Shown piece by piece: positions 4,023 to 62,684 of a stretch of 64,000 nt of DNA. Both the position numbers and the translations under genes were made by a program. Each line of letters begins with the position of its first letter. Within the stretch, counting starts at the first letter, position 1. The stretch is from positions 1-64,000 of the forward strand of contig OZ025761.1 of NCBI GenBank assembly GCA_964019335.1, read 5' to 3'. Under the pieces are notes generated by a model, which worked only from the letters and a program-made list of their open reading frames with translations, was not told the DNA's origin and did not search any database. This DNA is from Diplonema japonicum (Eukaryota > Protista > Euglenozoa: Diplonemea).

Positions 4023-4412
4023 TTCTTTTTTTTTTTTTTTTCGTTTTCCTTCAAGCGTTGTGATAGCCATGCTAGTTTTCAATATTCACCTATTTCTTTT
4101 GGGTAAAGGTTTGAAAATGCTACTCAAACTGCTGCCTTGACTTGGTAGTTAGTTTGTTGGGTGCTGGCTTTGATGAAGCATGTTTGCAATCGTAGTCACT
4201 ATTGTGGTGTGATGCAAAATGAATGCCGCACGCTAAAAAGGTGCGTGCGTACTGCCGTATGCCGACAGCGTAGCCCCCCCCCCCCCCCCCCCGCAATAGA
4301 TACCATAAATGCAATAAAAAATATCGATCGTGCAAGGTGGCAACAACAAAGAGGTAAAAGGACTGTGTGTGGGGTGAGGACACTAAACTCACAAAAAAGA
4401 AAGAAAATAAAA

Positions 4413-4521
4413 GAGTTAAAGGAGGCCGGTGTTGGCAACGCCCTGCACAAGAACTGTCTACTTGATTACAGGGGGTGCACCGCGGCTGAGTTGTAGCTTC
4501 TTTTGCGTTCTGCGCCGTGTC
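4413..4521 (-). mobile_element. 5'-truncated copy of the ribozyme-headed retroposon-like family
   Basis: Matches 27885-27992 (gagttaaaggaggccggtgttggcaacgccctgcacaag...). Confidence 0.75.
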
Positions 4522-4800
4522 AAAAAAATTAAACATAATAAACGCCCAACTCTGCTAATCTGTTGTCCGTGCTGCTCTTTTTGCCACAGCTGAAGATTCC
4601 CATTTTATGCACAAAGGACTGGTGCCCGCTCCTCCTGCAGGTCACAACTTCCAAACAACTATCTACACACAGTGAGCATGTACGGGTCTGTAGTAATAGC
4701 TAGCGTTCGGTGTCTCCGTAAACGGGGAAAGAGGGGGGGGGTAAAGGTGCCAAATAGCAACTGCCCTTTTTTGTTTGTTTTACAAGTATAGCTTTTCTTC

Positions 4801-4837
<37 letters not shown>

Positions 4838-5005
4838 AGGTTACCCGTGGAGTGGGAAAACACTACAAAAAAATTGAGTGGAAAAGAAGGTTATAGGTTA
4901 AAAAATTGTGGGCTACCGTAAACAGTGGTGAAAATTCTGCTTACAGACATGGGTGGAAAAAAGTTAACAGGTTACTTGTACGTTGTTTTCTCGAAAAAGA
5001 AGGCA

Positions 5006-5092
5006 GTCTCGATTGTAGTGGTGCCATGCGGTATGTGACACAGCGGCCACCCTTGTGAAACTTCGCCCCGAAGCGTAAAAGTGGGGAGGTAA
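5006..5092. repeat. Partial copy of dispersed repeat B
   Basis: gtgccatgcggtatgtgacacagcggccacccttgtgaaacttcgcc is shared with 6040-6478 and 56518-56840. Confidence 0.85.
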
Positions 5093-5834
5093 AAAAAAAA
5101 AAGAGGGAAGAAATGATAGCAAGCTCTGTATTCTTCGTACCGAGTAAAGATTTACTTCCGCAGGTTTTTTTTTTACCCTTTTTGCTTTTTCCCCCCTTAT
5201 GGCGAGAAGAACCAACTACGACAAATTCATCTATTCTTTTAAGGCTTGCGTTTTTGTGCTCACCAGCCTTCCCGTGCTCAGTCCCCGTTGTGCTGGTTCG
5301 ATGGGCTGTGGCTAGTGTGACTGAAAACTACTATTGAAAACAATATGCAGACTGACAAAGAAAATTCCCGGACACCGAAAATAGAAAGCTCTACTTTGTC
5401 GGGCCCGGCACTTTCATTTTTTTTGAACAGTGCTTTCGATATTGCCTTAGGGATGGAATGGTAGATATAAATAGAAGAGAAAAAACTAAAAAAAGAAGGG
5501 GGGGGGGAAACATGAACTAATGGAAAGAAAACGAACGGTAGGAACCTCAGTATGGGAAGGCATGGAATGTGCTTCATATCCCTAGGTGTTCGTGGACCTG
5601 CCTTTCTGCAGTCCGAGGCCTTCGCCTTTCAGCAGATTACGAGTCTTGCAATTGTGATAGCAGAACCTCTGCACCACGAACTATACTTAATATGACATGA
5701 AGCTAAGTATAAAAAAAAAAAAAAAAAAGAAGAATTCTTTTAACGTCAAGGTGGCAGCACAGTCGGCTCCAAGTGCCCATAAGTACATGGGGTGGGGTGT
5801 TTGTGGCCTAACGACACACGGAGTGTGCTTCCCT

Positions 5835-5904
5835 GAAATGACTCGCTTAAGGGGAGCGTTTGCTACGCGCCTAGACCCGGCTAAAGGTCTAGGTGCGTAA
5901 CAAA
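5835..5904. repeat. Dispersed repeat C with a 19-bp-stem hairpin (5859-5904)
   Basis: gaaatgactcgcttaagggga..cctagacccgg.aaaggtct is shared with 33307 and 36070. Inverted repeat tttgctacgcgcctagacc/ggtctaggtgcgtaacaaa. Confidence 0.8.
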
Positions 5905-6039
5905 TTGACCTAGGATTAAAAAGAGGGGGGGGGGGGGGGTTGAATTAATGACTATTTCAGATAACCTAATTTTTACGAAACTTTTTTTTTCCCTCACAAG
6001 TGGTTTAATTTCAAGAGCGAAGCGAGAAAAAAAAAAGTT

Positions 6040-6478
6040 GTCTCGATTTTAGTGGTGCCATGCAGTATGTGACACAGCGGCCACCCTTGTGAAACTTCGC
6101 CCTGAAGCCTCCCAAGTCCCGTAGAATGTAAAAGTGGAGAGGTAAAGAAAGCTTAGAAATTGAAAATAGGGAGAGGGGCCACAGAAGCAATTAAACACCA
6201 ACTGGAGAGTTGTGGGAGGCTTGCTTCACTGGCACGATGCCGCGGGGAGGCTACTTGCCTGACCTGGTGAAGCCACCTCCTTGTTCGATGTAATGGGATA
6301 AGGGACTCTCCGTTGAGGGCGATGCTAACTGGCGCCACGCGTAGGGTGGGCTCTCCACCCCCGTCCAGGTTTCCCCACGTGTACGGCTTTAGAACGAGAG
6401 TTTCCCTTTCGCTTGTGTTTCTCCAAACCACAATTACCAGGAACTACCACAGGGAGGTTGGAAACATTGGTCCCCCCC
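6040..6478. repeat. Dispersed repeat B, longest copy
   Basis: Colinear similarity to 56518-56840. Nested complementary segments GTGCCA/TGGCAC and AAGCCTCCCA/TGGGAGGCTT. Confidence 0.85.
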
Positions 6479-6507
6479 CAAAAAAAAAAACTCTGAGTTT
6501 AAAAAAC

Positions 6508-6790
6508 CTGGCTGATTTTTATTTAGTATGATATTCTTATTTTAAAATTTTGTAAAGTTAAAAATGAGGAAAACTTGGACACCAAGAATATTGCTTCTCA
6601 TTGACCACAATTTTAGGCGGAGCAATGCTGAGTTATGTCGTCGCACTGTCTCTTGGAGACGCCGGTTCAAGTACTACCCGGCCGAGGTGTCAGCGGCCCC
6701 TAGATTCAAAAAATGAAGACGAGAGTAAAAATCAGATACTTTACATGCACGTTTTAAAGCCAAATTTAGCCTATTGCTTTACGTTTATTC
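6508..6790 (+). repeat. AT-rich dispersed repeat, homologous to 60380-60700
   Basis: Shared blocks tggctgattttt, ggacaccaagaa, aaaatgaagacga and aagccaaat occur in the same order. Confidence 0.65.
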
Positions 6791-7320
6791 CGCACTTTAC
6801 AACATTTTGGAAGGCGACACAAAGTTGTTTTGAAAGTGCCCCCCCAAAAAAAAGAGAAAAAGAAATTGTTGTCTTGTCCGCATGAGCAAAAAAAGAGGGG
6901 GGGGGGGGGTAAAGAAAAGAGAAAAAAATTAGAGAATTTCTAAGATTTTCTTCTTTTTTTTTTTCCTTCTTTAATTCTTTGCTCCGCACTACAGATACGA
7001 ACCCTTTTTGCTCATTTTTATTTATTCTTTTTTTTTTAAAAAAATTGTTTTCGGTTTTTTAAAAAGGGTAAAAAGTCTAGCAGAATAAAAAAAAGAGAGA
7101 CAAGGTACAAAAAAAAAAAAAAACTTGATAAAACTTCAAATGCGGGAAAAATCGTCACCGTTCTGCGGATGAGATAGACGGCACCGTAGTCAGAGTAACC
7201 TGGATGAAGAACGCTGTCACCTTTCCAGAATCTCTGATCGGCTTCACTCCTACTTCCACTGTCGGGAGCATGATTCGCTCCAGTCGCGATGCAACACCAC
7301 TTAACGGGTATTTTAAATGC

Positions 7321-9003
7321 TCACAAAACGATTTTTTCGATCGATGCACCCCTCCCGATGACTTCTTTCAAGGTTGTTTCAGCAGCCGTAACTTCTTCAG
7401 TCTTTTCCACAGAGTCAATATTTAAAAGGCGTAGAGACTCGTTAGCATTTCCTTGCATGTATGCCTTCCCTGCCTCGTTGTAGGCCTCCCACGGGTTCAC
7501 TGCCATGGTATACAGCCATTCATCATCACCCTCCTCTTCATTCTCACCTTTCGAGAGTACCTCGTAGGCCACCTCCTCACCCTCGCGCCCGGCAACCTGC
7601 AGCCGCACTGCAACAAGCTTCATGTGATATGCAAAACTTGTCTCGCTGTGCACTGAGCTGTTGCACAACACTTTTAGCCCACGCTGCCGGCCAAGCCGCT
7701 GCAACACATAAGCCGTTACAGCTGCAGGACCGATGTTGCCAAACGACATGAGCTCCACAGATCCCAAAGGGCCGCAGTAAACCGTCCCGCTCGCCACCCC
7801 CATCACGATGTCGATCCCTGCCAGACCCAACACATCATGCACAGCCATCGCCGCCTCCACACTGCTTCTCACGTGGACCACACACCTCTTCGCAGCGTTG
7901 AACGAGGCGTGCACATGATCCCCCACAACCACACCCACCACACCCCCATGCTGCTTCACCTTATCCACTATCACGTTGATGTAGCTCTCAAACCTCTTCA
8001 TGAACACTGGGGTGTCCCCAACACATGCGTGCGACCCGAGCATGTTCGTCACGGTGCAGCTCACTTTCTTCTTCTCAAGAAAAGGTGATTTAATCGACAT
8101 CGACATCCCCAGTGTGCTCTTGCTGCCCGTGCTGCACGTCCGTACCCCGCTGTTCATAGTCCCGATTATTTCATCACTGTCATCGTTGTTCAAGAAGCAT
8201 GACTGAGGAAGGTAGGGGCGGTAGGACCGGAGATTCTGCAAGATGTCACTGAAGGCTGTGCGGAGCGGTAGTGGAAGGGGAGTGCTGTCGATGGCATGCT
8301 CTGCAGACTCAAGGTCGAAACGAGAGAGGCAGTCGGCAATGTGCTCCGCCGCTGTGATGACACGCTGCATGGACATGCGCTCCCTTTGAAGGTCGTGGGC
8401 AAAGCCACGAGTGAAGTAGAAGTCCAAGAGAAAAACACACAACCTTGTTAAGAAAGTACCCAAGGAGGTCAAGGCGCTCACTTCACACGGTGGGGTGGAG
8501 CAATCCCAGTTGTGGGCCTCAGCACGGTCCCCAACAGGCATCATGTTCGGTGTATCGATGTCGTAGAGGCCCCAGCGGAAGGTGTCCTCTGTGGCGACAA
8601 TAAAGAGCCAACCAATGAGCAAAGTGACGAGAGCAACACTGACACGATTGGGGAGGCGGCACACAAGAGCAGCGTCAATGTAGATAACAAAGAGGGGCCA
8701 GTGCAGTTCCTTCGATGCCACTAGATGGCCGAGGTCGTTAATGATAGTCGCAAGGCCTAAGCAGTACATCGCGATCTCTGCCAGTTGAGGTCGCAGCCTC
8801 TTCCACATAAACAGCTCGAATAGAACCACAGGCATCACTGCTAGTGTCAAGACGTTCCCTATCTCGGACAACCCCTCCACTACCGTGCTGAACAGTGCCA
8901 ACACAAAGCTCACAATAGCTCCCGCCAGAAAGATCTTCTTTCTAAACACTTCATATGGACCGTCATCCGGGTGGAGGACAAAACGTATCAAGCACGACAT
9001 CAT
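7321..9003 (-). CDS. Multi-TM protein with degenerate class III cyclase domain, paralogue 2
   Basis: 560-aa ORF, nearly identical to paralogue 1 over about 1.2 kb and divergent in the last ~115 aa. Confidence 0.88.
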   Translation of the reverse strand: MMSCLIRFVLHPDDGPYEVFRKKIFLAGAIVSFVLALFSTVVEGLSEIGNVLTLAVMPVVLFELFMWKRLRPQLAEIAMYCLGLATIINDLGHLVASKELHWPLFVIYIDAALVCRLPNRVSVALVTLLIGWLFIVATEDTFRWGLYDIDTPNMMPVGDRAEAHNWDCSTPPCEVSALTSLGTFLTRLCVFLLDFYFTRGFAHDLQRERMSMQRVITAAEHIADCLSRFDLESAEHAIDSTPLPLPLRTAFSDILQNLRSYRPYLPQSCFLNNDDSDEIIGTMNSGVRTCSTGSKSTLGMSMSIKSPFLEKKKVSCTVTNMLGSHACVGDTPVFMKRFESYINVIVDKVKQHGGVVGVVVGDHVHASFNAAKRCVVHVRSSVEAAMAVHDVLGLAGIDIVMGVASGTVYCGPLGSVELMSFGNIGPAAVTAYVLQRLGRQRGLKVLCNSSVHSETSFAYHMKLVAVRLQVAGREGEEVAYEVLSKGENEEEGDDEWLYTMAVNPWEAYNEAGKAYMQGNANESLRLLNIDSVEKTEEVTAAETTLKEVIGRGASIEKIVL

Positions 9004-10586
9004 GAAGAACTTGTTCTTTTCTTCTTTTTTTTTCCCCCTTCGGAGGTTTCCTTTTCATAAAATAATGACACTTGAAGTAAGTAGGCAATAAAGTCTTAAC
9101 CACTATAATCGGGGGCGTGCCTCAGCTGTCCTTGTAAAAGGGCATGATGCACGACAAGCGAACCTACAACCACATGTGAGATAAATCTTGCGGCAAAAAA
9201 TCAATCATCAAGGTTGCTCTAGTTTGATAATTATGTGAACACGAACTTCATGTACTTGGGCTACTTGTGGCTGAGTAACTTCCACTCCTTGAGTCCTTGA
9301 AGTCATATCGTTCAGAGCTTGAAAACAAAATAAAAGACTTATTACTTGGTATATAAAGCGTACAAACAAAAGCTGGGCATCAGCTCTTGGGTAAATATAT
9401 ATATATTTTTATACATGGCATCGTTTCAAAAAAAAAGAAAAAAAAAAGAAGAAAAAAAACTCAAATTAGGCCAATTGACACTTTTAATAACTTTCTAAGT
9501 ACTTTTTCCAAAAGAATCTTTTTCTACAACTTTTCCGGCCCAGGTTAGGAAAGAAAACACCTCTGGAAATTGGAAAGTGAGTGTTGCTAGTACCCAAAAA
9601 AAATTCAGTCCTAGGGGCAAAAAAAAAAAAAAAGAAAAATAGGTTTTTCCACTTTGCACAAATTCAGTAAAAGAGGGGGGTGTTCCAAAAAATGGACGCT
9701 TTTAAACTTGCAGTTGAAAAGCTAGGGGTAAAAAAAAAAGGGGGGGGTATTCGGACTGAGAAAGGGTAAATGAACTTCTGCCATCATTTTCTGATTGGTT
9801 TAATAGACAACAAGACACCACACGGCGCCAATTAGTCAGACATGAGGCTTGACCACATCACACGGAATAAGAGCAGCTGGCCTTACTGTTGGAAAGACAG
9901 TGTGCAAGCCATGCCGACCCAGTGCAACGTCCTTGGAGGATGAAATAGAGATCAATTCTGATCATTTAGCAGTCTCCGGCGTCTCGCACGCAAACGCTAC
10001 AGGATGACTACCGTAAGGTGACTCGAGGTGTCATATCAAGATGTTTTTCGGTCATCCGACATGTGCCAAACCCACGGATATGCGATTACTGTGCAAAAGC
10101 ACAACGGATGCGTCTTTCGCTATTGCAAACGAAAGCATATATTCTCTGACTTTACCAAAACGACTAATACCCGATTTTTGACCCTAAAAACTGAATTTCT
10201 CATAGGTTAAAAATAGCACTCTTGAGCGATTTCTGACCCAGGTTCTTTCCTAATATGAGCTCGGAAATATAGAGAATTTTTCTTTGAGGGGTGGCAAGCC
10301 CAAAGATGCAACGAAAGTGTCAATTGGCCTCATTTTTTGGGGGGGGGTTTGAAGTCGACCCAAATAAAAAAGAGAAAAAAGAGGGGGGGGGGGAATTAGG
10401 TAACAAATGGGACGCTGCTTGCCCTTTATTTGCCCCCTTTTTTTAGTTTTATTTTTGCCATTTTTAAGACTCTTGCAACAGAAATATAAGTTTTTCCAGG
10501 AACATATGCAGCAGACAGGGGACAGTGCGTAGGGCAGGCTAAGTACCCCCCTAGAAAAGTCCCCGAAAACTGACCCCCAAAAAAAA

Positions 10587-10660
10587 GGCTATGCTGGCAA
10601 GGAAACGTTTCCAAGCATTTTTTTGAATAAGAAAACGGAAACGGAAACGTTTCCTTACTT
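10587..10660. mobile_element. Degenerate copy of the GGCTATGCTGGCAAG MITE
   Basis: Left end matches the TIR of 22529-22611. Confidence 0.5.
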
Positions 10661-10789
10661 TCGTTAAACGTGGTAAACGTGGGGGGGGGGGGGGAATTTT
10701 TAAATTTTAAAAAAGGGTCTAAAGAAAACCACCCAAATTTACTAAAAAATCAAAATTCGCCGGATGAAATCAAAATTCGCCGAATTAGA

Positions 10790-11140
10790 GCATTTCTGAG
10801 CACTTGCTAATGCTTTATTTGTATTTTTGAAAACAGTAACCACGGTTTGGTACCTGAAATCTTTGCAGAAACAAACTTACCATCCTAACCTCGGGGAAAT
10901 GATAGACATTCATCAGAAATGCCGCGCAAAAACAGAAAGGTTCACAATGACACCGCAAGACAGTACTCCGCCGTTCAAACGGTAGCGACGTCCTGAAGAG
11001 CCGCGTTCAAAGGGAGGTATACCATGTCAGTTTTTTTAAAAGTTTTTCGGGAAAATTGAGAAGATCCAGGTACCAAACCGTGGTCATCTTTTTAAAAATG
11101 CAAAATAATGCCTTGTAGGAGCCCAAAAGTGCCCAGAAAC
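10790..11140. mobile_element. Degenerate foldback/MITE-like element
   Basis: accacggtttggtacctg (~10838) and caggtaccaaaccgtggt (~11067) are inverted copies inside longer decayed inverted arms. Confidence 0.55.
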
Positions 11141-11248
11141 GGGCGGAAATCGATTTTTTGGTCGAGAAAGGGCTGTGTACATGGATTAGGCGGCTCCAGT
11201 ACCCACTTCCCCCCCGCCCCCCCCCCCCCCCTGCTATTTTGGGGTTAA

Positions 11249-12955
11249 TCACATTTCTATCGTTTCTACATTTATAGTACCTTGCACGATCCCAGTCAGC
11301 CAGAGTTCTTCGGGGATCTCTTCGTGGTCAGCTCGAGCCAAATCAAGCAGCCGTATTGCTTCAGTTTCATCCCCTTTCAGGAACGACTTCCCTGCCTCAT
11401 TGTAGGCCTCCCACGGGTTCACTGCCATGTTGTACATCCACTCGTCGTTGTCGTCACACTTGCCACCCTTCCCTAGTACCTCGTAGGCCACCTCCTCACC
11501 CTCGCGCCCGGCAACCTGCACACGGACAACAATCACCTTCATGTGGAACACGAAGCTCACCTCGCTGTACACCTTACAAGCGCACACCACCTTGTGCCCA
11601 CGCAGCCGACCAAGCCGCTGCATTATCGATGCCGTTACAGCTGCAGGACCGATCGTCACGTACGACATGAGTTCTTTACACCCAGCGTTGCCACAGAAAG
11701 CCATCCCGCACGCCACCCCCGTCACGACAGCGATGTCGGTCGCCGTCGCCAGCTCCAGCACAGCCATCGCCGCCTCCACACTGCATTTGGTATGCCCCGA
11801 ACACCTTTTCGTACCGTTAAACGAAGCGCGTACATGGTCCCCCTCAACCACGCCCACCACGCCCCCATGCTGCCTCACCTTCTCAACTATTACAGAGACA
11901 TAGTTCTCAAACTTCTTCAGGAACATCGGGTCTTTCACACTTGCATGCGACCCGATCATGTTCATCACAGTGCAGCTGATATACTTTTTCTCAAGTACAG
12001 CTTTGATTTCTTCTCTAACACTGCTGTTGCTCATGGTGGTGATGGTGGTGTGGCGCGACCTCGCCACAGGGGTTTGATGCTGGCTCTCTTGAATAGAAGA
12101 CAAGTCACTTTCGCTTGAGAACTGTAAGCACGACTGGGGAAGGTAGGGACGGTAAGTGTGGAGATTCGAGAGGATTTCACTGAAGGCAAGGTGAAGTGCG
12201 GGTGGAAGTTCCGATCTGCCGATTTCCTGCTCCGCCAACTCAAGGTCGAAGCGAGAGAGGCAGACCGCGATGTACTCCGTCGCCACGATGACACGCTTCA
12301 TGGAGTCTCGCTCCCTCTGCAAGTCTTGAGCAAAGCCACGAGTGAAGTAGAAGTCCAAGAGAAAGACCAGTGACTGAAAAGCAAAAGTGATCATCGAAGG
12401 CTGGAAACCCCGTGCACACGGTGGGGTGGAGCAATCCCAGTTGTGGGCCTCAGCACGGTCCCCAACAGGTATCATATTTGGCAGTCCGATGTCGTAGAGG
12501 CCCCAGCGGAAGGTGTCCTCTGTGGCAACGATGAAGAGCCAACCAATGAGCAAAGTGACGAGAGCAACACTGACACGATTGGGGAGGCGGCACACAAGGC
12601 TGATGTCCACGATAGGGACGAAGACGGGCCATAAGCGATCGAAAGAGCTTAACACGTTAGCTAGATCATTGAGCAGAAGAGATATTGCGAGAGCGTAGAT
12701 GGCACACTCCACTACCAGCTTGTTGATCCTTCTATTAACAAGCATGTCGACAAGGACAGCCTGGGCCGCAGCTATGGCGAACGCGCACCCTAGCTCTTGT
12801 ATCCCCCTGGACAGCAGAGCAGCAGTACACAGCGCGGTTGTACTAATAACGCCATGAAAGAAGAGCTTCTTCTCAAATCTTGTTCTGCTGTCGTCATCTT
12901 CACGAAAGATTCGTCGGGGCAGGCAAGCTGAAGAACAGCGCGCAAGGCATTGCAT
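11249..12955 (-). CDS. Multi-TM protein with degenerate class III cyclase domain, paralogue 3
   Basis: Same architecture as paralogues 1 and 2 (YRPYLPQS, EGDHV, EWMY). Start placed at MQCLAR and is uncertain. Confidence 0.85.
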   Translation of the reverse strand: MQCLARCSSACLPRRIFREDDDSRTRFEKKLFFHGVISTTALCTAALLSRGIQELGCAFAIAAAQAVLVDMLVNRRINKLVVECAIYALAISLLLNDLANVLSSFDRLWPVFVPIVDISLVCRLPNRVSVALVTLLIGWLFIVATEDTFRWGLYDIGLPNMIPVGDRAEAHNWDCSTPPCARGFQPSMITFAFQSLVFLLDFYFTRGFAQDLQRERDSMKRVIVATEYIAVCLSRFDLELAEQEIGRSELPPALHLAFSEILSNLHTYRPYLPQSCLQFSSESDLSSIQESQHQTPVARSRHTTITTMSNSSVREEIKAVLEKKYISCTVMNMIGSHASVKDPMFLKKFENYVSVIVEKVRQHGGVVGVVEGDHVRASFNGTKRCSGHTKCSVEAAMAVLELATATDIAVVTGVACGMAFCGNAGCKELMSYVTIGPAAVTASIMQRLGRLRGHKVVCACKVYSEVSFVFHMKVIVVRVQVAGREGEEVAYEVLGKGGKCDDNDEWMYNMAVNPWEAYNEAGKSFLKGDETEAIRLLDLARADHEEIPEELWLTGIVQGTINVETIEM

Positions 12956-13144
12956 GTGTAATGTAGTGTTTAGTAAGCAAATAAAGAAAAAGAAAGCTGA
13001 ATGGTTAGTGGCGAAATGCAAAGGCTCCATAACCATAAACCAACCAAAGGAGACAGAAAAACGGAAAACGGTCAGGCTTTTGTTAAAAAGCCGCTCAAAA
13101 TTAGTAGTGGCCTCATAGGCTCAGAAATTGTGGATAAATACGGT

Positions 13145-15244: not shown

Positions 15245-16266
15245 CGCACTCCATGGCAACAGTGCCCACCCCCGCCTGTTGTCGAACTTATAAAAGAAAA
15301 AATAAACCATAATAGGAAGAGCGAGGGCAAGCGAGCAAGCTTGGTGCGTAAGAAAAGTCCAGTATTTATGCGACACACCCTTGTGAACCAAAGCCTCCCG
15401 AAGCCCCTTGCTCCAGTAGAAAGAAAAAGGAGAGGAAGAGAAAAGCCGTGCTTTGAAACAGGGAGAAGGTCCGCAAGTACAATATATGTGGGATTCTTTA
15501 CTGCCACAGGACCACTTCCAAAAAGACAAATGGAAGTGAGGGGATAGGGAGGAATGAGGTGCTTTTAAAAAATGCAATATGGAGCCAACTCCATTAGATT
15601 ACAGCTGCTACAATCAGGTCTTGCGCAGAAGAGGTCAGCTTCGTAAACCCTGCAGGTTTCAAAATAGACCACCCTAGCCATCCTGCTGCAAGGGTTACAT
15701 AGGAAGAGGGGCAGAGAATGTCAGAAAGTTTCGGGGGAATGTAATATACGCGATGCGGTTACAGGTGCGAAAATTGTCTTTTTTTTTTTTTTTTCTCATT
15801 CTTTTTTTTTTTTCTGTAGGGCGTCACCACCGGCTTCCTTTAAATCATCGAGTTATTTTCTTTTCTTTTTTTTTTTTCCTAAGTTCAATCAGACACCCTG
15901 CTGGCTTGCCAAGCCCACCTCTCCCCTTCGCTAGTTGAGAAAAGTGACCAGATGTACTTTTTGTTCCTTGCGACGCTTCTTGTTAAACATAACCGTCATA
16001 CAAGAAAAAAGGAAAGGACAAAAAAAAAAAAAGGAAAAAAAGAGGGAGACATTTAGAAGTCCTTTTTTTATTGTCATCTGAGTCTGCGGGACGCCGATAG
16101 GAAGAAGGATTTGCCACTCTTGTAAAAAAGGGAACACCTTAAGGCCGACAGGGGGGGGGGGGGGGGGGGGGGGGTGAATAATAATAATGGGGAAAAGAAA
16201 GAGATAACAACGGCAGGAGGGTAAGGTGCATAAGAATATGCTAGGTAAAAAAAGTTAAGGGGGGGA

Positions 16267-23544: not shown

Positions 23545-24176
23545 TGAGCTCGTCAGGATTAAAATGTCAACACTTTTTTTTGTTACGAAAAATTCTTGTT
23601 TTGATTATTTGAGCAAAAAAGGGCAGCATGCAACCATAGGAAGATGACATACATGGTGTACCTGTTGCCGTTCTTTCAATTGCGATGCTTGTTTTGCCAT
23701 GAGGGCCTATTTTTTGCTTTTTTTCAAGGGGTTCCTAAGGGATTTTCAGAAAAGGCCAATTCTTAACACTCGCCTGCTCATAGCTTCGACATTGGTATCT
23801 TTGGAGCAAACCTACATTCTCTACCCGGGTTTTCCTTTTTTTTTTCTTTTGCACTCATAAAACTTAAAAATTGAATTTTTTGTTTCTTTTTAAGGGGTTT
23901 TTATGAGATTTTAGCCTTAAAATAGGCCAAAACGGCACTATTTCTCCCCACCCCATTTTGATAGTGATTTAGAGTCCAGACCACCCAAGAGACCTCAAAG
24001 GTTTCACAGATTTTCAATCTGCGTCCATTCCTCCTGTCGCTTTTCACGGGAAAACGAAAATGAATTCGATAAATCTCGGTGTGGCGAGTGGGTGCTCACC
24101 GTTGTAAATAAATAAAAAATAGAGTCTGGGTTATTTGTAACTTCCAAACGTTGACATTTCTTTCCGGACGAGCTCA
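23545..24176. mobile_element. Non-autonomous TIR element (TGAGCTCGTC TIR), Tc1/mariner-like by TA flank
   Basis: TIR tgagctcgtc.gga....aaatgtcaac at both ends. A longer inverted relative lies at 57450-58464. Confidence 0.85.
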
Positions 24177-27445: not shown

Positions 27446-27884
27446 GGTGTGCAAAGTCGGGATTTCATCCTACAGAAGGTTAAAACCCGAACAAAAGTTT
27501 ATCGCTCGACACTTTTAGCAAACACCAAAAACTTTCATTTACAATGAGAGAAAAAAAGAAGAAAAAAAGAGAGAAAAATCATTTAACCCTGAAGAAGAAG
27601 ATTTAAGACTTTAGTTTAGTTCCTTTTTTTTTTTTTTTTTTTTTTTTTCTTGCCTTTTCCCCCCTTCTTTTTCCCCTTTCCCACCCGTATCTCTTTTCTC
27701 TTTTTTAACAAAACTGATACAAAGACAAAAAAAAGGGGACGAAATATATATAAAAAAAAAGAAAAGAAGGAAAAAAAAAAAGAAAACAAAACACAGCATA
27801 GGCAATGGTGCAGCAAAACACTACGGGCTGATCTGTTTTTCCTTCAAAAAAAGAAAAATAAATACATATTATAAATATATATAT

Positions 27885-28166
27885 GAGTTAAAGGAGGCCG
27901 GTGTTGGCAACGCCCTGCACAAGAACTGTCTACTTGATTACAGGGGGCGCGCCGCGGCCGAGTTGTAGCTTCTTCTGCGTTCCGCGTCGTGTCCTTAATG
28001 CGTGCGGTGTGCAACTCAACTCCAGCCGGGGCGTCCCGGGTAACCAAGATTCTGCGCTCGTGCAGTTCTTCCACTCGGGCGCTACCGGTGATGACCGACG
28101 AGGAGGTCAACAGCGAACAACACATCTGATGTTTTTTTCTTATATTTTCATGTTATCCCCACCACC
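27885..28166 (-). mobile_element. Retroposon-like element with an internally deleted HDV-like ribozyme
   Basis: Homologous to 61215-61535 and starts at the same GGTGGTG. It lacks J4/2 and the 3' strand of P2. Confidence 0.8.
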
Positions 28167-28492: not shown

Positions 28493-28555
<63 letters not shown>

Positions 28556-32151: not shown

Positions 32152-33195
32152 TCAGCACAGAACACAGCACTTTCCTGGCCGTCTGCGTTCCATGAATGGT
32201 ACCTTGTTGCATCTCCGCATGAAGTCATCCCCGACATCTGTGACGCCCTTCCTCAGGTGCCCGAGGTTTGCGGTGGTCAGAGAACTGCAGCCAGATAGAA
32301 AGCCGTCCCCCAGCTTTGTCAGGTTTCGCATTGCACTGAAGTCAACAGAAGTGAGGGAGGTGCAATTTCTGAGAAAGAAGTCGCCCACCGACACCACGTC
32401 ACGAAGGCCAAGATCCACAGAAGTGAGGGAACTGCAATAGTTAAGAAACCAATGACCGACCCCCCTAACATTCCGAAGGGGGCTCAAGTCAAGGGTCTTA
32501 AGTGACTTGCAATAAGCCATGAAGCCGCCACCTACCTCCGTCACGTTCTGAAGGGGTCCCAGATCCACCTCTGTCAGGGAATTGCAGTCAGCGAGGAAGC
32601 TGTAGTTGGTGTACGTGATGTCGCGAAGGGGGGTGAGATCAATGGCCTGCAACAACGTGCATCCAGCTAGAAATCTTTTTCCAACTTTCCGAACACACTG
32701 AAGGGAGGTGAGGTCAAGGGTGACAAGGGACCGGCACTCAAACAAAAAGCCATCCGCAATGGATGTCACACACTGCTTGGGGTCCGTCATCTGTAGGTGA
32801 CGAAGGCCAGAAGGGAGGTACGCTGCGTGAAGCTCAAGACAGTCCACACCCGATACCTCCACCTGAAGAAGAAGGCCAGGGTCCTCCTCCAAACGCTGTT
32901 CTATCGCCTCCTTTGTCTCCTCTGAAGACAGCTCCTGTGAAAGGACACACATCGTGTTGCGGACATTGCAGCAGAGAAGGAGCTCGCACCCCTCCCACAT
33001 CCCAAGGTGCTGTATCTCATTCCCACCGAGAGTCTCGTCCAGTTCTTCACCTTCGAAGTGCAAGAGGAAGGTTCCCACCTCTACTCCAGCAGCCTCCCCT
33101 GCCTTCTTGTACAAGTCCTTCACAGTGTCACGGCCTCCCAGCTCTACCTCGTGCGTCTTGTTGTTCTCCATCCTGATGAACACCGTCAGGCTCAT
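32152..33195 (-). CDS. Ubiquitin-like domain + 25-aa BspA-like LRRs + CaaX
   Basis: N-terminal LTVFIR..THEVEL..DTVKDL Ubl pattern, repeats SL..lDl.PL.NV..VG..FL..C, and C-terminus RRRPGKCCVLC. Confidence 0.85.
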   Translation of the reverse strand: MSLTVFIRMENNKTHEVELGGRDTVKDLYKKAGEAAGVEVGTFLLHFEGEELDETLGGNEIQHLGMWEGCELLLCCNVRNTMCVLSQELSSEETKEAIEQRLEEDPGLLLQVEVSGVDCLELHAAYLPSGLRHLQMTDPKQCVTSIADGFLFECRSLVTLDLTSLQCVRKVGKRFLAGCTLLQAIDLTPLRDITYTNYSFLADCNSLTEVDLGPLQNVTEVGGGFMAYCKSLKTLDLSPLRNVRGVGHWFLNYCSSLTSVDLGLRDVVSVGDFFLRNCTSLTSVDFSAMRNLTKLGDGFLSGCSSLTTANLGHLRKGVTDVGDDFMRRCNKVPFMERRRPGKCCVLC

Positions 33196-36147: not shown

Positions 36148-36230
36148 AAGATAAAGAAAAAGATGTGGGGACGGAGGGAAAAGCGGGGGGGGGGGGGGGG
36201 GGGGGCGAGATAAAAAAAAAGCCAGTCAAG

Positions 36231-36287
36231 GTGCTACCGGTGATGACCAAGGAGGCCAACAGCGAACAACACATCTGATGTACTTCT
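36231..36287 (-). mobile_element. Fragment of the ribozyme-headed retroposon (degenerate core)
   Basis: gctaccggtgatgacc..ggagg.caacagcgaacaacacatctgatgtactt matches 61443-61498. Confidence 0.75.
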
Positions 36288-36415: not shown

Positions 36416-36468
<53 letters not shown>

Positions 36469-46614: not shown

Positions 46615-46669
<55 letters not shown>

Positions 46670-48295
46670 TGTAATATTTTCGTTTTCCCTTGGACCCCAT
46701 TTTTGCGTCTCTCGATATCAGTGACGGGGGTTCGCTGGGTGTGCACCCATGACCATTCTATCAGCCTTCTCCGTGAGCTGCATAGTCTAGCTATGGCAAG
46801 TCAGGTCTTCACTTTACTGAAGGGGTCCCACTCCTTGTGCATCATCTTGTCTAATTATAAACACTCTATAGAGGTCTTTAAATAGACAAAATGGTGGCAT
46901 ATAGTGGTGGACGGCTTTGACAAGGCAAAAAATAGGGATTTTCTGCCTCGTCAAACGGGTTTAGACTTCTGACCTTGGAAGGAAAAAAAAAAAGAAAAAG
47001 AAGAAGAAGGGGGGGGGGGGGGGGAGGAAAAAAGAAGAAGAGAATCACCAAATTAAGAATTCGTGTTGACACACAACGCGGTAGGTACTAAAGTGAAGGT
47101 TCAAAAAAAGGGAAGGGGGGGGGGGGTTTAGAATTTCTTGTTGTAGTTTCGTTTCTTTTTTTTTTTTTCCATATATTTTTGCTGTCTACGCACAACTTTC
47201 AGTAAAGAAAGCCTTTTTTTTTTTTTTGTTGCTTGCAGGGTTGACAAATTTAGAGAAAGAAGAGAAAAAAGAAGGGGGGGGAGAGAGAATAGCTATGGTA
47301 CCACCAACAAAGCACTTGAGATAAGCTAAACATAGCTCTTTCCCCAGCGACCGCACCGATACCCTTTGCTGGTCATCAGGAGAGGGGAGAGCTTACAAGG
47401 GGGGGAGTTGGCCCTGCTGACTGGACCTAGCCAATATGGTCATTGTCAAAGGTTATCTTCCAGCAGAGTGAAATAAAAAAAAAAAAGATTTATTTGCCAC
47501 GCCCCCTATCAACCATACGGCCTATGATGGGGGACCGACAGTGTAGCTAGCGCTTTTTTGCAATTTGTGTTATCGCGACTTAGTGCGATAAGCCGAGTCT
47601 TGTAAACACTTGAAGAAGAAGCATTTTGCAGGAGCCTTTTTTTTTTTTTTTTTTTTTCTTTTTTAAATTCCACTTCTTTTTCGACTTGCTCAGGTCGCAC
47701 CCACTAGTTGGAAGTGTGCTGGTTGTTTGGCACTTTAGCTTGCACAAGACTGTTGGCGATGTCACCTGCATAAAAGAAAGAAGAAAGACTTTTTAACCAT
47801 CTTTTGTAAATTCTTTTTTTTTTTTTCTTTTGGGAGGGGTTGCATCGATGGGTAGAAAAATAAAAAAATACTTTTTTTGCTTTTTTGCTTTTTTTTTTTT
47901 TTTTTTTTTTTTTTCATGGCAGGATATATTAATGGAGCTAAAAAGAAAAAGAAAATTCATCTATCAATGCACGAAAGAAATCAAAGGAAGGTATTGTAAT
48001 ACTTGTGCCATTTGTTTGCTTTTTTTTTTTTTTTTTTCTTTTTTTTTTCCGTTCATATTGCGTGTTGAGAGCACTACGCATCAAGAAAGAGGTAGGAAGG
48101 GATAACAGGTAGGGATATCATTTAGTTCCTGTACCACATGGCAATGCACCAGTGGCCGAGGTTCAAATTCTGCTTTTTTTTTTTTTTTTTTTTTTTTTTT
48201 TCTTACTAGAAGCAACAAAGAAAAACAATAGGAAAGAAAAAAAAATTCACTTTTCAAAACGAAATTTCTTTGGGAAAAGAAAAGAGAAAAAAATT

Positions 48296-57449: not shown

Positions 57450-58464
57450 TGAGCTCGTCCGGAAAAAAATGTTAACAAATGACCCTCCTATGCGGCGGAA
57501 AACCCCCGTTAAATTTCTAAGTAAAAAAGTAGTCCGACACCACTTTGTGTGCAGAAATGCAGTCTAAGCTTGAACACCATATAGGTCAAAATGCTCGCCG
57601 TTTGTTTTATTTTTAAAACGCACGTGCAAAAACATGTTTTTTTAGAATGGTTTTTGGCAAACGAAGTTACAAATAACCCAGACGCCATTTTTTATTTTCG
57701 TTTTTCCGTGAAAAGTGACAGGAGGAATGGATGCAGACTGAAAATCTGTGAAACCTTTGGGGTCATTTTGGGTGGGCTGGACTCTAAATCACTATTAAAA
57801 TGGGGTGGGGAGAACTTACCCTTAATGTGCCATTTTCGCCTATTTAAGGCTAAAATCCCTTTAAAACCCCTTAAAAAAACAAAATTTTCACTTTTAAAGT
57901 ATTAGGAGTGCAAAAGAAAAGGAAAAACCTCAGCAGATGGGTAGAGAATGAAAGTTTGACCCCAAAGATACCAATGTCGAAGCTCTGCATGAGCAGGCAA
58001 GTGTTAAGATTTGGTTTTTCTGAAAAAGGTCAAAATCCCTTAGGAACCCCTGAAAAAGCCAAAAAATGGGGTGTAAAAACCGGGTTTTCAGGGGCTATGC
58101 GGCGCCATATATTTTTCGCTAAGTACTTTAACAGTAACCCGACCCTGGGTTGTACCCAGGGGTCACAAGTGCTTGAACACCAATTTTATGCACCCTAGAT
58201 GCTGCATTTTAAGCAATAAAAATGCATTTTAAACATTTTCGCCGTTTTTCTGACCTCTCTTTTTCGCTTCCCGGGGGCAGCCGGTTGCAAAGCCTGCCAC
58301 CCTCATGGCAAAACAAGCATCGCAATTGAAAGAACGGTGTCATGTACACCATATATGTCATCTTCCTATAGTTGCATGCTGCCCCTTTTTTGCTCAAATA
58401 ATCAAAACAAGAAATTTTCGGAGGTGCCCAAAAAAGTGTTGACATTTTCGTCCAGACGAGCTCA
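57450..58464. mobile_element. TGAGCTCGTC-TIR element, longer copy, TA target duplication
   Basis: ta|tgagctcgtcc...cagacgagctca|ta. The interior is the reverse complement of 23545-24176 plus insertions. Confidence 0.85.
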
Positions 58465-59933: not shown

Positions 59934-61214
59934 AAGTACGTGTGGGACAGGCTAAGAGCGGTATGAAGAAAATAATAATAATAATAAAAAATAATAATAA
60001 ACCATAAGACTCAGCAGCTCGAGCGTGACGGCCGAAGAAGGGAGGGTCAACTACCGGCCTTTCTGAGTGGGGGGGGGGGGGGGGGGGGGGCTGTAGTGGT
60101 GTTTATAAAAGATGTTTATTTCGTGCAAAAATATGTTTTACACAATTGCTACACGATTCGTCCTTCAGGGGGGGGGGGGGGGGGGGGGAGGGGGTTGCAA
60201 CGAAAAGTAGAAAAAAAAAAAAGAGAAAAGGAATAATAGATGGGTGTCATATATATTCACTCGGACTTAGTAATCATTGAGCTCGTTGGAAGAGGAAAAG
60301 CACATATAAATTTTAAAGTAGAAATCACGAGTAAAAAAAAAAAAATAAAAAAAAGAAAAAAAAAAAAAACACTCCGAGTGGCTGATTTTTATTTAAAGCA
60401 TAATATTTTTTTATTTAATTTTTGTAAAATTAAATGAGGGAAATTCGGACACCAAGAAAAATAAGGCTAAGTTTTCTAGTTATGTTTCAAAGAGAAAAAA
60501 CGTAACATGCATCAGCCACAGATTCAAAAAAAAAAAAAATTCACTGCGGTGGCGTGCCTACCTTATGATACTCCCCCTTTTTTTGGGGGGGGGGTCGTTC
60601 CCTAAAAAATGAAGACGAAATGCTCAGAGTAAAAACCAAGAGTTTACTTTGCATTTTACAGCACTTTTTTTTTTTTCAAAGCCAAATACGGCCTTTTACT
60701 TTGCACTTTGCATTTACTCGTAATATGATTTCTGATTTTTTTTATGATTCTGCAGAATTTCCCTCATGTAAGTTTTGTGGAATTAAATAATATATATTCT
60801 CTCATTATGAATACTGTAAAGCGAAGAGAGAGAAAAAAAAAGGGGGGGGGAGGGAGGGGGGCTGACAAAAACGTCCGGACGCCAAGAGAGAGAGAAAAAC
60901 TCGGACACTTTTTGTTGGCCCATCGTCGCACTGTTATTTGTTTTTCTTTTTTTTTTTTTTTTTTTTTTTTTTTTGTGTTCCCCTTTTTTCTTCCCCCGTC
61001 TCTTCAACTTCTTCTGTTTTTTTTTTCTTTTTCCACGTGGAACCTACATACCCCCCCCCTTGTTATTTTCTTTCGTTTCTTCTTTGTTTTTTTTTTCTAG
61101 CTTTTTGCTGATCTTGTTTCTTTCCCCAATCCCATTCGATAAAAAAATCTTATGAAGGGGGGGGAGAGAAAACAATTTAAAAAAAATATATATAAATAAA
61201 AAGAGACTATTTAA

Positions 61215-61535
61215 GGGTGCCTGCAGTATGCGGCAGGGCGCCCTGCACAAGTATCGTCTACTTGATTACAGGGGGCGCGCCTCGACCTAGTTGTAGCTTC
61301 TTCTGCGTTCCGCGTCGTGTCCTTAATGCGTGCGGTGTGCAACTCAACCCCAGCCATGGCGCCCCTGGTAACCAAGATTCTGAGCCCGTGCAGTTTGCTG
61401 CCTGTTCGTCACCCTGAGCATCTGCGATACGTTCTTTCGGGCGCTACCAGTGATGACCGACGAGGAGGTCAACAGCGAACAACACATCTGATGTACTTCT
61501 TTATATTGCCATATTTCTGTGTTATCCCCACCACC
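61215..61535 (-). mobile_element. Short retroposon-like element headed by an HDV-like ribozyme (most complete copy)
   Basis: Homologous to 27885-28166, 4413-4521 and 36231-36287. Confidence 0.8.
61397..61535 (-). ncRNA. HDV-like self-cleaving ribozyme
   Basis: P1 GGUGGUG/CAUCACU with G1-U wobble; P2 GCUGUUG/CAGGCAGC; P3 ACC/GGU; L3 UCCUCGUC; P1.1 CC/GG; P4 CGCCC/GGGUG; J4/2 ACGAA. Confidence 0.8.
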
Positions 61536-61553
61536 AATAAAAAAATAGAGCCT

Positions 61554-62684
61554 TTAACACACAATGCAGCCTCCCTCCTTCAACTTGCGTTTCTTCACCG
61601 GTATCCCATCGCACCCCTCCATGAAGCCAGGCCCGACAGAAGCGACCGTGCCTTTCATATGAGAAATATCGACCGCCGTCAGCGAGGAACATCCTGCAAG
61701 GAACGCGGCCCCGATGAGCTTTATGTTCTGAAAACTGCGAAGGTCCAGAGAGGCCAGGGAAGAGCAGTCAGATAAAAAATAATCGCCCACCGAAGAAACC
61801 TGGCTGAGCTGGCTGAGGTTGGCTGAGGTGAGAGAGGTGTTGTTGGAAAGGAAGTGGTGGGACAGCGACTTCAAATTTCGAAGAGGGCTGGTGTCGATCA
61901 CTTTCAGGGACTCGCACTTTGACAAAAAACCCTCCCCCACATACTCCACCCACCGAAGCGGTGCGAGGTTCACCGATCTCAAGCTCGTGCAGCTACTTAA
62001 AAAACAAGAATCAACAGATTTCACATTTCGCAGTGGGCTGAGGTCGATGGTTTCCAGAGACGAACAACAACTGAGGAAACCAAAATCCACCATCTTCATG
62101 TTTTTACATGGTGTCAGGTCGGTCGCCTTGAGAGATGTGCAGCCGTACAAAAAGTATTTCCCGACAGTTAGAACCCCCAACAAAGAAGAAACATCCAACG
62201 TTACAAGGCTCTCACAGTTTTTTAGAAACCCATCGCCGATAGCCTGCACGTCGTTCAGGGGGTCTGCCACCCGGAGGTGTTTCAAGCCTGCTGGTATGTT
62301 TTTCGCTGATATTTTGAGAAAGGTGATGCCTGATGCATCGATTTCGAGGAGGAGGTTGGGGTCTTCCTCCAAGCGCTTAGCCATCACATCTCTTGTGGTT
62401 TTCGTGCACAGGTCGTTCACCGCAACACGCATTTCGCCCTCTTTGCAGCAGAGAAACAGTTCGCATCCCTGCCACATCCCCAGTTGTTGTATTTCTTCTG
62501 TGCCATATGCGTCGTCAAGTACCGTGCCCTCGAAATGTAGAAAGAAGCTGCCTTTGGTTCCCACCTCCAACCCAGCAGCCTCCCCTGCCTTCCTGTACAG
62601 GTCCTTCACAGTGTCATGGCCTTCCAGATCCACCTCGTGTGTCTCCTTGTTTGCCATCTTGACGAACACCGTCAGCAGGCTCAT
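61554..62684 (-). CDS. Ubiquitin-like domain + 25-aa BspA-like LRRs + CaaX, paralogue of 32152-33195
   Basis: Same architecture; ends KKRKLKEGGCIVC. Confidence 0.85.
   Translation of the reverse strand: MSLLTVFVKMANKETHEVDLEGHDTVKDLYRKAGEAAGLEVGTKGSFFLHFEGTVLDDAYGTEEIQQLGMWQGCELFLCCKEGEMRVAVNDLCTKTTRDVMAKRLEEDPNLLLEIDASGITFLKISAKNIPAGLKHLRVADPLNDVQAIGDGFLKNCESLVTLDVSSLLGVLTVGKYFLYGCTSLKATDLTPCKNMKMVDFGFLSCCSSLETIDLSPLRNVKSVDSCFLSSCTSLRSVNLAPLRWVEYVGEGFLSKCESLKVIDTSPLRNLKSLSHHFLSNNTSLTSANLSQLSQVSSVGDYFLSDCSSLASLDLRSFQNIKLIGAAFLAGCSSLTAVDISHMKGTVASVGPGFMEGCDGIPVKKRKLKEGGCIVC

Follow-up and report, generated by a model that had tools for sequence, protein, structure and literature searches.

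The results of this analysis point to a self-cleaving RNA at the head of an abundant short retroposon in the genome of Diplonema japonicum. The DNA in question is a stretch of 64,000 nucleotides (contig OZ025761.1, positions 1 to 64,000; hereafter the window), in which a repeated element lies on the minus strand with its first base, G1, at position 61535. The 5' module of this non-autonomous retroposon of ca. 335 nt likely folds as a ribozyme of the hepatitis delta virus (HDV)/CPEB3 type that would cut 5' of G1. An earlier reading made from the letters alone (the sequence-only reading) had placed an HDV-like fold at the 5' end of a retroposon, and this was borne out in that the predicted cut site falls exactly on the boundary of the repeat family. 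The HDV-like ribozyme is real as a fold and probably active, with self-cleavage being predicted from sequence. The helices (P), joining strands (J) and loop (L) of the fold are as follows.

61397..61535, minus strand: HDV-like ribozyme candidate, 139 nt, read directly; sole match in the window of the descriptor given below
61535-61529, minus strand: 5' strand of P1, GGUGGUG; predicted cleavage 5' of G61535, where the family has its 5' boundary
61477..61528, minus strand: J1/2, 52 nt; a 1-nt linker, then a P1.2-like hairpin of 10 bp adjoining P2
61527-61518 with 61486-61477, minus strand: the 10-bp hairpin of J1/2, read directly
61470..61476, minus strand: 5' strand of P2, GCUGUUG, 7 bp with CAGGCAGC
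61469-61467 with 61458-61456, minus strand: P3, ACC with GGU, 3 bp
61466-61459, minus strand: L3, UCCUCGUC, whose CC pairs with the GG of P1.1
61455-61449, minus strand: 3' strand of P1, CAUCACU, 7 bp with GGUGGUG including G1.U and G5.U
61448-61447, minus strand: P1.1, GG, 2 bp with the CC of L3
61443-61439 with 61414-61410, minus strand: P4, CGCCC with GGGUG, and an upper GA/UC extension
61405..61409, minus strand: J4/2, ACGAA, with the candidate catalytic C at 61408
61397..61404, minus strand: 3' strand of P2, CAGGCAGC, with one bulged G

Every helix was found in the position, order and register that the sequence-only reading had assigned. The order, P1-J1/2-P2-P3-L3-P3'-P1'-P1.1-P4-J4/2-P2', is that of the nested double pseudoknot of the HDV/CPEB3 type, and the linker pattern between P1 and P2 is 1 nt, 10-bp hairpin and 0 nt. 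L3 was UCC(U/A/C)CGUC and J4/2 was (A/G)CGAA in all subfamilies of the element, which thus carry the core residues of HDV. When 37 copies were aligned, the C and G of J4/2 were invariant and both A residues were nearly invariant. The P4 loop of the window copy (61410..61443) has a 4-nt deletion.

The window was scanned with a descriptor composed from the general HDV consensus, which called for G1, 7 bp in P1, 3 bp in P3, an L3 of 7-8 nt whose first base is U and whose sixth is G, two P1.1 pairs of the Watson-Crick kind, 4 bp or more in P4, the sequence C-N-R-A immediately 5' of P2', and 6 bp or more in P2, where one bulge was tolerated; J1/2 could be up to 70 nt long. A scan of this kind had been proposed along with the sequence-only reading, and its outcome favoured that reading: on both strands of the window there was one match, with G1 at 61535, and 41 block-shuffled windows (ca. 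5 Mb) gave no match, which puts false positives below ca. 1 per 5 Mb. In 279 kb of other loci of the same genome, 23 matches were obtained, and all 23 were members of the family.

The descriptor scan was also applied to two metagenome loci that are labelled as human-gut assemblies and are GC-rich microbial contigs. A compact HDV-like candidate was seen in a GC-rich metagenome contig (L158:737-826:+; identical sequence at L187:5829), where it sits between a TAG stop and the next ATG. It has P1 GGCCCGC/GCGGGCC, J1/2 AA and P2 GCTCCCG/CGGGAGC, and its L3, TCCACGTC, is the commonest L3 of the 333-nt family in the aligned sample. Since the descriptor recovers this unrelated motif, it recognises the class and not merely one sequence. 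When metagenomes were scanned with the core pattern, nearly all matches lay in GC-rich coding DNA of bacteria, and none was a relative of the family.

The window holds one full copy of the element, a second copy and two pieces.

61203..61535, minus strand: full copy, 333 nt, non-coding; G1 at 61535 and the last base of ...AATAGTCTC at 61203
27883..28166, minus strand: second copy, of another subfamily and with another 3' tail; private 38-nt deletion
4395..4521, minus strand: 5'-truncated copy found by BLAST, element positions ca. 215-297 plus a tail of the type of the second copy
36230..36287, minus strand: fragment found by BLAST, element positions ca. 36-96

The element measures 333-337 nt, longer than the ca. 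300 nt given by the sequence-only reading, and the 139-nt fold is its head. Genome-wide copies with a shared 5' boundary, which that reading had led one to expect, were readily found. An exact 16-nt head occurred 708 times in the genome, and an exact 31-nt stretch from the end of P2 to the start of P4 occurred 459 times (0 for the reversed control pattern in both cases). BLAST of the window copy against other loci gave full-length matches of 89-97% identity, and the 40 copies that were scored, out of 1384 first-look candidates of a whole-genome search, were 88-97% identical. Seven public runs (contigs) support the high copy number and the variant sites. The homology of 34 copies aligned with their flanks begins at GGTGGTGGGG, and the flanks upstream are unrelated; G1 is the 5' boundary of the family, the -1 base and the flanks being variable, in keeping with an HDV-like ribozyme, which cuts at the first nucleotide of P1 and needs no particular sequence before it.

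The first pair of P1 is G1-C in the family consensus and G1.U in the window copy. As to the second copy, the sequence-only reading was right that its head is shared up to the same G1; that reading also gave it a G1-C pair. Its 38-nt deletion removes the 3' strand of P4, J4/2 and P2', so that this copy is incomplete and cannot be a ribozyme. The element has no coding capacity, no tRNA-like head was detected by ARAGORN, and scans for tRNAs, promoters and terminators found nothing. A head derived from an RNA polymerase III (Pol III) transcript (tRNA, 7SL or 5S) was found neither by ARAGORN nor by Rfam, and 5S parts are add-ons in ca. 5 of ca. 700 copies.

Target-site duplications, 5' truncations, chimeric retrocopies and the lack of coding capacity uphold the claim that the element is a non-autonomous retroposon. 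In the window, the ends of the full copy comprise the following parts.

61203..61237, minus strand: 3' module, read directly; hairpin CCUGC / 8-nt loop / GCAGG, followed by a CACCCUUAAAUAGUCUC box
61188..61202, minus strand: T-rich run; from flank comparison, oligo(T) tail plus probable target-site duplication TTTTTAT(T)
61536..61553, minus strand: 18-nt spacer from a stop codon to G1, ending in TTTTTTTATT

Full copies end in ...CCCTTAAATAGTCTC, and a T-run follows. The 3' module consists of a 5-bp hairpin and a CCCTTAAAT-type box; variants with the same layout are present in the subfamilies and in other short elements, and one variant occurs 440 times in the genome. The TTTTTTTATT at the end of the spacer is probably the upstream copy of the target-site duplication, or possibly a remnant of the 3' end of a spliced leader. 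At other loci, the T(n)G found upstream is repeated downstream behind a longer T-run (T15G/T40G in L002, T29G/T47G in L007 and T14G/T15G in L023), and L030 has CTTTTCTTTTTTT on both flanks. The extra T residues thus separate the end of the element from the 3' target duplication and form a tail of oligo(T) on the ribozyme strand. The opposite orientation, with a poly(A) tail, was considered and is excluded by the geometry of the target duplications. The insertion targets are T-tracts. In truncated copies it is the 5' end that is missing and the 3' end that is retained, as is expected of reverse transcription starting at the tail.

Very long homopolymer runs (G of at least 20, A or T of at least 50) were seen at many intergenic sites of the window, for example at 16150-16175, 28498-28555, 36416-36466 and 46616-46670, and are landing sites of T-tailed elements. 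Mini-elements of ca. 45 nt, made up of just the 3' hairpin, a CCCTTAAATGTCTC box and a T-run, also lie in T-tracts (L009, minus strand, ca. 3090-3200; L044, minus strand, ca. 2650-2740; L018:3130-3220:+). A second tail family, CAGTGAGCACCCCC...CACTGAAAT...CGAG plus a T-run, is inserted directly after copies in L017 and L022. A related tail fragment, GGGCGTCACCACCGGCTTCCTTTAAATCATCGAG, at ca. 15810-15850 on the plus strand of the window is antisense to the genes and was the sole antisense piece seen.

The copies lie in the same direction as the genes. All 23 loci with flanking open reading frames (ORFs) of at least 170 aa and all four copies and fragments of the window were in sense orientation, and the genome-wide matches cluster in same-strand blocks. 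The simplest cause is that sense-strand polypyrimidine tracts serve as targets and fix the orientation. Since the copies are sense to the polycistronic gene strand, read-through transcripts carrying the ribozyme must exist. Of the 20 copies that follow a sense ORF, 7 begin 13-71 nt downstream of the stop codon of that ORF, which reflects either T-tracts right after stops or a bias in insertion or retention. Such near-stop copies were seen in L006, L008, L012, L005, L023 and L030 and in the window (61536-61556).

Retrocopies fused to other RNAs record where the 5' end of the template lay. The genome appears to be of the kinetoplastid type; the long ORFs of the window are all on one strand, and a 36-nt spliced-leader sequence ending in ...CAGTTTCTGTACTTTATTG is recognisable in flanks. 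In six genome copies, the spliced leader is fused to GTGGTGGGG, i.e. to G2 (e.g. L009:1809-1850:- and L003:1809-1830:-; the leader in L009 is without its first 3 nt). G2 is where trans-splicing at a T-tract with an (A)G1 acceptor would join the leader, and these chimeras appear to be retrocopies of trans-spliced RNAs. In five further copies (L041-L045, e.g. L043:1501-1640:+), which belong to different subfamilies, a complete 5S ribosomal RNA is fused to G1. The five junctions are all different (CTAAAC+A, CTAAAA, CCAAAA, CCAAACC+A and CCAAACTTTTT), and one of them includes the U-tail of 5S. 5S is likewise fused to sequence internal to a long interspersed nuclear element (LINE; L033 and L034), to the last 45 nt of the element (L036 and L052) and to other short elements (L038, L039 and L050).

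U6/L1 chimeras arise by a template switch of the retroposon RNA onto another RNA. The differing junctions, the U-tail and the presence of 5S on LINE and other elements argue for template switching onto 5S RNA, and the fusions look like template-switch chimeras or short interspersed nuclear elements (SINEs) with a 5S head. A role of 5S as a Pol III promoter module, removed by the ribozyme, was considered and judged less likely in view of the differing junctions, the U-tail and the 5S on LINE fragments. On either view, these independent chimera events place the 5' end of the template at G1. The bulk of the ca. 700 copies start at G1 without a spliced leader. Where transcripts of RNA polymerase II (Pol II) acquire their 5' ends through trans-splicing, some form of processing is needed to produce a defined end that lacks the spliced leader, and the predicted ribozyme cut is exactly at G1.

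The consensuses of three subfamilies were compared. Their heads differ in the J1/2 loop (an 8-9-nt indel and a few substitutions) and otherwise only at two hairpin positions, L3 position 4 (U/A/C), the P4 loop and bulge, and the first base of J4/2. The changes in the J1/2 hairpin, C17>U and A18>G, keep the pairing as wobbles. The 150-nt body before the tail shows ca. 14 substitutions between the three subfamilies. A rough Poisson estimate gave 1 change in ca. 60 core positions against ca. 5.6 expected (P ca. 0.02), which is only suggestive of a head core more constrained than the body. Across 37 copies, 98.3% of the cells were paired, as compared to 33-54% with the partners slid, the structure having been derived from the same sequences. 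The minimum free energy fold of a consensus-like copy includes P1, the J1/2 hairpin, P3 and P4.

Several observations weigh against the ribozyme, and the covariance models are among them. The sequence-only reading had named a search of this kind as a check, and its result was divided: Rfam applied to the whole window gave no match at the gathering score, while the best of 4227 Rfam families on L043, a sister copy with a short J1/2, was RF00094 (HDV_ribozyme). Its score, 18.4 bits where 50 bits is the gathering threshold (E 0.83), is not significant. In this alignment, the core CCUCCUCGUCGG of L043 is in register with the RF00094 consensus CCUCCuCGcUGG, as is GGCGAAC with GGCuAAu, and the 5' strand of P1 alone is misplaced. 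The low score and this misplacement arise because the model cannot bridge a structured J1/2 of 44-52 nt. The alignment agrees independently with the manual assignment, though not significantly.

Other points on the same side concern the fold itself. Compensatory changes were seen in none of 37 base pairs in the 37 copies, which are ca. 94% alike, and the changes found were one-sided only, e.g. C-G to U-G; with a mean column identity of 94%, this count lacks power. The nested minimum free energy fold of the window copy favours an alternative pairing, and shuffled sequence was as stable as the two copies folded (z -0.27 and +0.29). The first P1 pair of the HDV ribozyme is G1.U, whereas the family consensus has G1-C; moreover, P1 contains many wobble and A-U pairs and P2 is bulged. 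The descriptor was composed after the candidate had been seen, which weakens its statistic somewhat. For the host, efficient self-cleavage 13-71 nt downstream of the stop codon, as it would occur in 7 of 20 genes, looks costly.

If G1 were a transcription start, no cleavage would be needed. A master copy with a Pol III promoter or an internal promoter like Pr77, the 5' segment of the trypanosomatid element L1Tc, would then be transcribed from G1, the oligo(U) would come from Pol III termination, and the fold would be vestigial, slow or inactive. An oligo(T) tail is what a Pol III terminator would leave, 5S genes stand directly upstream of some copies, the 77 nt of L1Tc serve as both promoter and ribozyme (PMC3383444), and the lack of covariation and of a significant Rfam score is compatible with an inactive fold. 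We nevertheless consider a transcription start at G1 unlikely, since neither a tRNA-like head nor any other known Pol III head is present, and since five different 5S junctions, one with the U-tail, fit template switching and not a fixed master driven by 5S. Besides, LINE fragments and other elements bear similar 5S fusions, the core is unchanged between subfamilies while the body has diverged, and a complete canonical HDV core standing by chance exactly at +1 is very unlikely.

Chance resemblance to HDV, with the 5' end of the repeat set by trans-splicing or nuclease processing at the T-tract, has a lower probability still. In copies with A at -1, the T-tract and AG before G2 make a good trans-splice acceptor, the six spliced-leader chimeras show this acceptor in use, and a folding z-score of ca. 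0 is as expected of a chance pattern. However, spliced-leader copies are just 6 of ca. 700 and start at G2 rather than G1, most copies have T or G at -1 and hence no AG acceptor, and the descriptor yields fewer than ca. 1 false positive per 5 Mb of shuffled sequence; we therefore regard this explanation as quite improbable. A gene resembling a C/D-box small nucleolar RNA (snoRNA) on the plus strand at 61445-61524 was suggested by a low-scoring Rfam match (snoU83, 19.1 bits, E 1.1) in a permissive scan of the window copy. This score is far under the gathering threshold (50); the match is also part of a 333-nt repeat with ca. 700 copies and runs antisense to the transcription units, and in the sister copy another snoRNA family was weakly matched on the opposite strand, as expected by chance. 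The snoU83 identity was rejected on these grounds, and a snoRNA-like gene at this place is scarcely credible.

Given a ribozyme at the 5' end of the retroposon, its propagation can be pictured as follows. Sense copies in Pol II polycistronic units would be transcribed within long precursors, as their orientation suggests. The ribozyme would cut 5' of G1, and the freed RNA would bear a 5'-OH and no promoter or flank; this step is proposed on the basis of the fold and the RNA 5' ends recorded in the retrocopies. The structured J1/2 hairpin with its very short linkers may hold P1 and P2 together, as in large HDV-like ribozymes. The reverse transcriptase of a LINE presumably recognises the 3' hairpin and box, and the U-run of the RNA would be primed by the A-run of the nicked bottom strand of a T-tract. 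New copies would then have the anatomy that is observed, with an oligo(T) tail, target-site duplications rich in T, and insertion in sense. As a side effect, copies 13-71 nt past a stop would sever the host mRNA from its 3' untranslated region (UTR) and poly(A) tail.

A wider and more speculative scheme, which we hold to be possible although the odds are against it, treats the element as a promoter-less SINE living on Pol II polycistrons, with an HDV-type 5' end and sense insertion primed on oligo(U). Several hundred potentially active ribozymes in 3' UTRs and spacers, a third of them within ca. 70 nt of a stop, might then form a genome-wide layer of mRNA 3' truncation or decay in an organism that regulates almost only post-transcriptionally.

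The partner LINE was sought among reverse transcriptase (RT) domains. At least 150 RT matches (PF00078) are present in the genome and fall into ca. ten score classes (e.g. L053-L082). Many of them are in uninterrupted ORFs of 1429-2185 aa, have identical scores and cluster on few contigs (C51, C52 and C61). The closest public relative of the LINE protein was a transcriptome ORF with 43% identity. No match of the tail designated A' was found 3' of the RT matches listed, and no partner was recognised among the RT loci examined, which lie inside ORFs and stop short of the ends of the elements.

HDV-like ribozymes are present at +1 of the trypanosomatid elements L1Tc, NARTc, ingi/RIME and SIDER (PMC3185411, PMC4035085). 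The trypanosomatid ribozyme L1TcRz/Pr77 resembles the 333-nt element in having an HDV-like fold at +1, including that of short non-autonomous elements, and in the release of the element RNA from co-transcripts, which is predicted for the 333-nt element. SIDER and the 333-nt element also share their location in 3' UTRs of host genes and the sense orientation. L1Tc Pr77 starts with CCCTGG... and ends in ...GCGCCTGCTG, and it has no resemblance to the head of the 333-nt element. This comparison was made by eye with an L1Tc 5' sequence rebuilt from primers printed in PMC3185411, not with the full Pr77 consensus; within that scope, it agrees with the sequence-only reading, which had seen no likeness to the trypanosomatid 77-79-nt signature. 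As compared to Pr77, the 333-nt element has an L3 and J4/2 of the canonical HDV type, a 2-bp P1.1 and a J1/2 hairpin domain of 44-52 nt. Whereas the trypanosomatid elements have poly(A), the 333-nt element is oligo(T)-tailed and homes to T-tracts. The spliced leader of the host is closest to a non-standard kinetoplastid entry, 'Euglenozoa 14' (PMC3795323). An effect on mRNA has been proposed for Leishmania SIDER2 (PMC4035085), and the cutting off of the 3' UTR and poly(A) by the ribozyme, if it is active, would resemble that proposal.

In R2 (PMC3774820, PMC3414825), a 5' HDV-like ribozyme defines the 5' end by self-cleavage of a co-transcript, as is predicted here. Short elements derived from R2 are like the 333-nt element in that they keep a ribozyme head and a 3' protein-binding end and have a large J1/2. 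While R2 is specific to 28S rDNA and co-transcribed by Pol I, the copies of the 333-nt element are scattered through Pol II polycistrons and are specific to T-tracts. Large HDV-like ribozymes are reported to be activated by a structured J1/2 domain with short linkers (PMC4908430). The 333-nt element matches the 'pinch' arrangement of the drz-Agam-2 type, i.e. a structured J1/2 (P1.2) with very short linkers (PMC4908430), and differs from it in having a bulged 7-bp P2 instead of a 12-bp P2, and in host and sequence. The L3 and J4/2 cores of the family align in register with the genomic HDV ribozyme of RF00094, at the sub-threshold score given above. A literature search on this family, on bodonid retroposons and on oligo-T-tailed retroposons found nothing specific in the papers searched.

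Ribozyme processing of retroposon 5' ends is already known from R2 and from L1Tc/SIDER, and the principle is not new. What appears to be new is a separate sequence family that combines a textbook HDV core with a structured J1/2 domain; its carrier, which has an oligo(T) tail, homes to T-tracts and lies always in sense; and the host, which seems to be of the kinetoplastid type with a spliced leader differing from the trypanosomatid ones. Provided that the ribozyme is active, host transcripts would be cut by hundreds of sense copies in polycistronic units, in some cases a few bases after stops, and the family would allow the influence of retroposon ribozymes on mRNA fate to be tested directly. 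It also offers a natural set of ca. 460-700 near-identical ribozyme variants for kinetic work. The interest lies mainly in the scale and in the position inside host transcripts.

The gene next to the window copy encodes a leucine-rich repeat (LRR) protein.

61554..62684, minus strand: LRR protein gene, 376 aa, with the stop TAA at 61556-61554; aligned end to end with the paralog at 32152-33195

The element begins 18 nt after this TAA. Since the gene is complete when compared to its paralog, the element lies in the 3' UTR and not in coding sequence. Both paralogs (61554-62684 and 32152-33195, minus strand) have a ubiquitin-like N-terminus, BspA-type LRRs and a CxxC-type C-terminus (CIVC and CVLC), and this C-terminal end looks like a prenylation box.

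Two other repeats of the window were observed. At 2346-13036 on the minus strand, three tandem gene copies are spaced 4978 and ca. 3920-3930 nt apart (repeats D13, D16 and D18); their ORFs are of 560-595 aa, and the one copy tested had no Pfam match. Inverted repeats of 81-91 nt that are 89-92% complementary and 34 kb apart occur at 23615-24064 and 57691-58390 (I1, I2 and I19), and these belong to another repeat family, which is present in both orientations.

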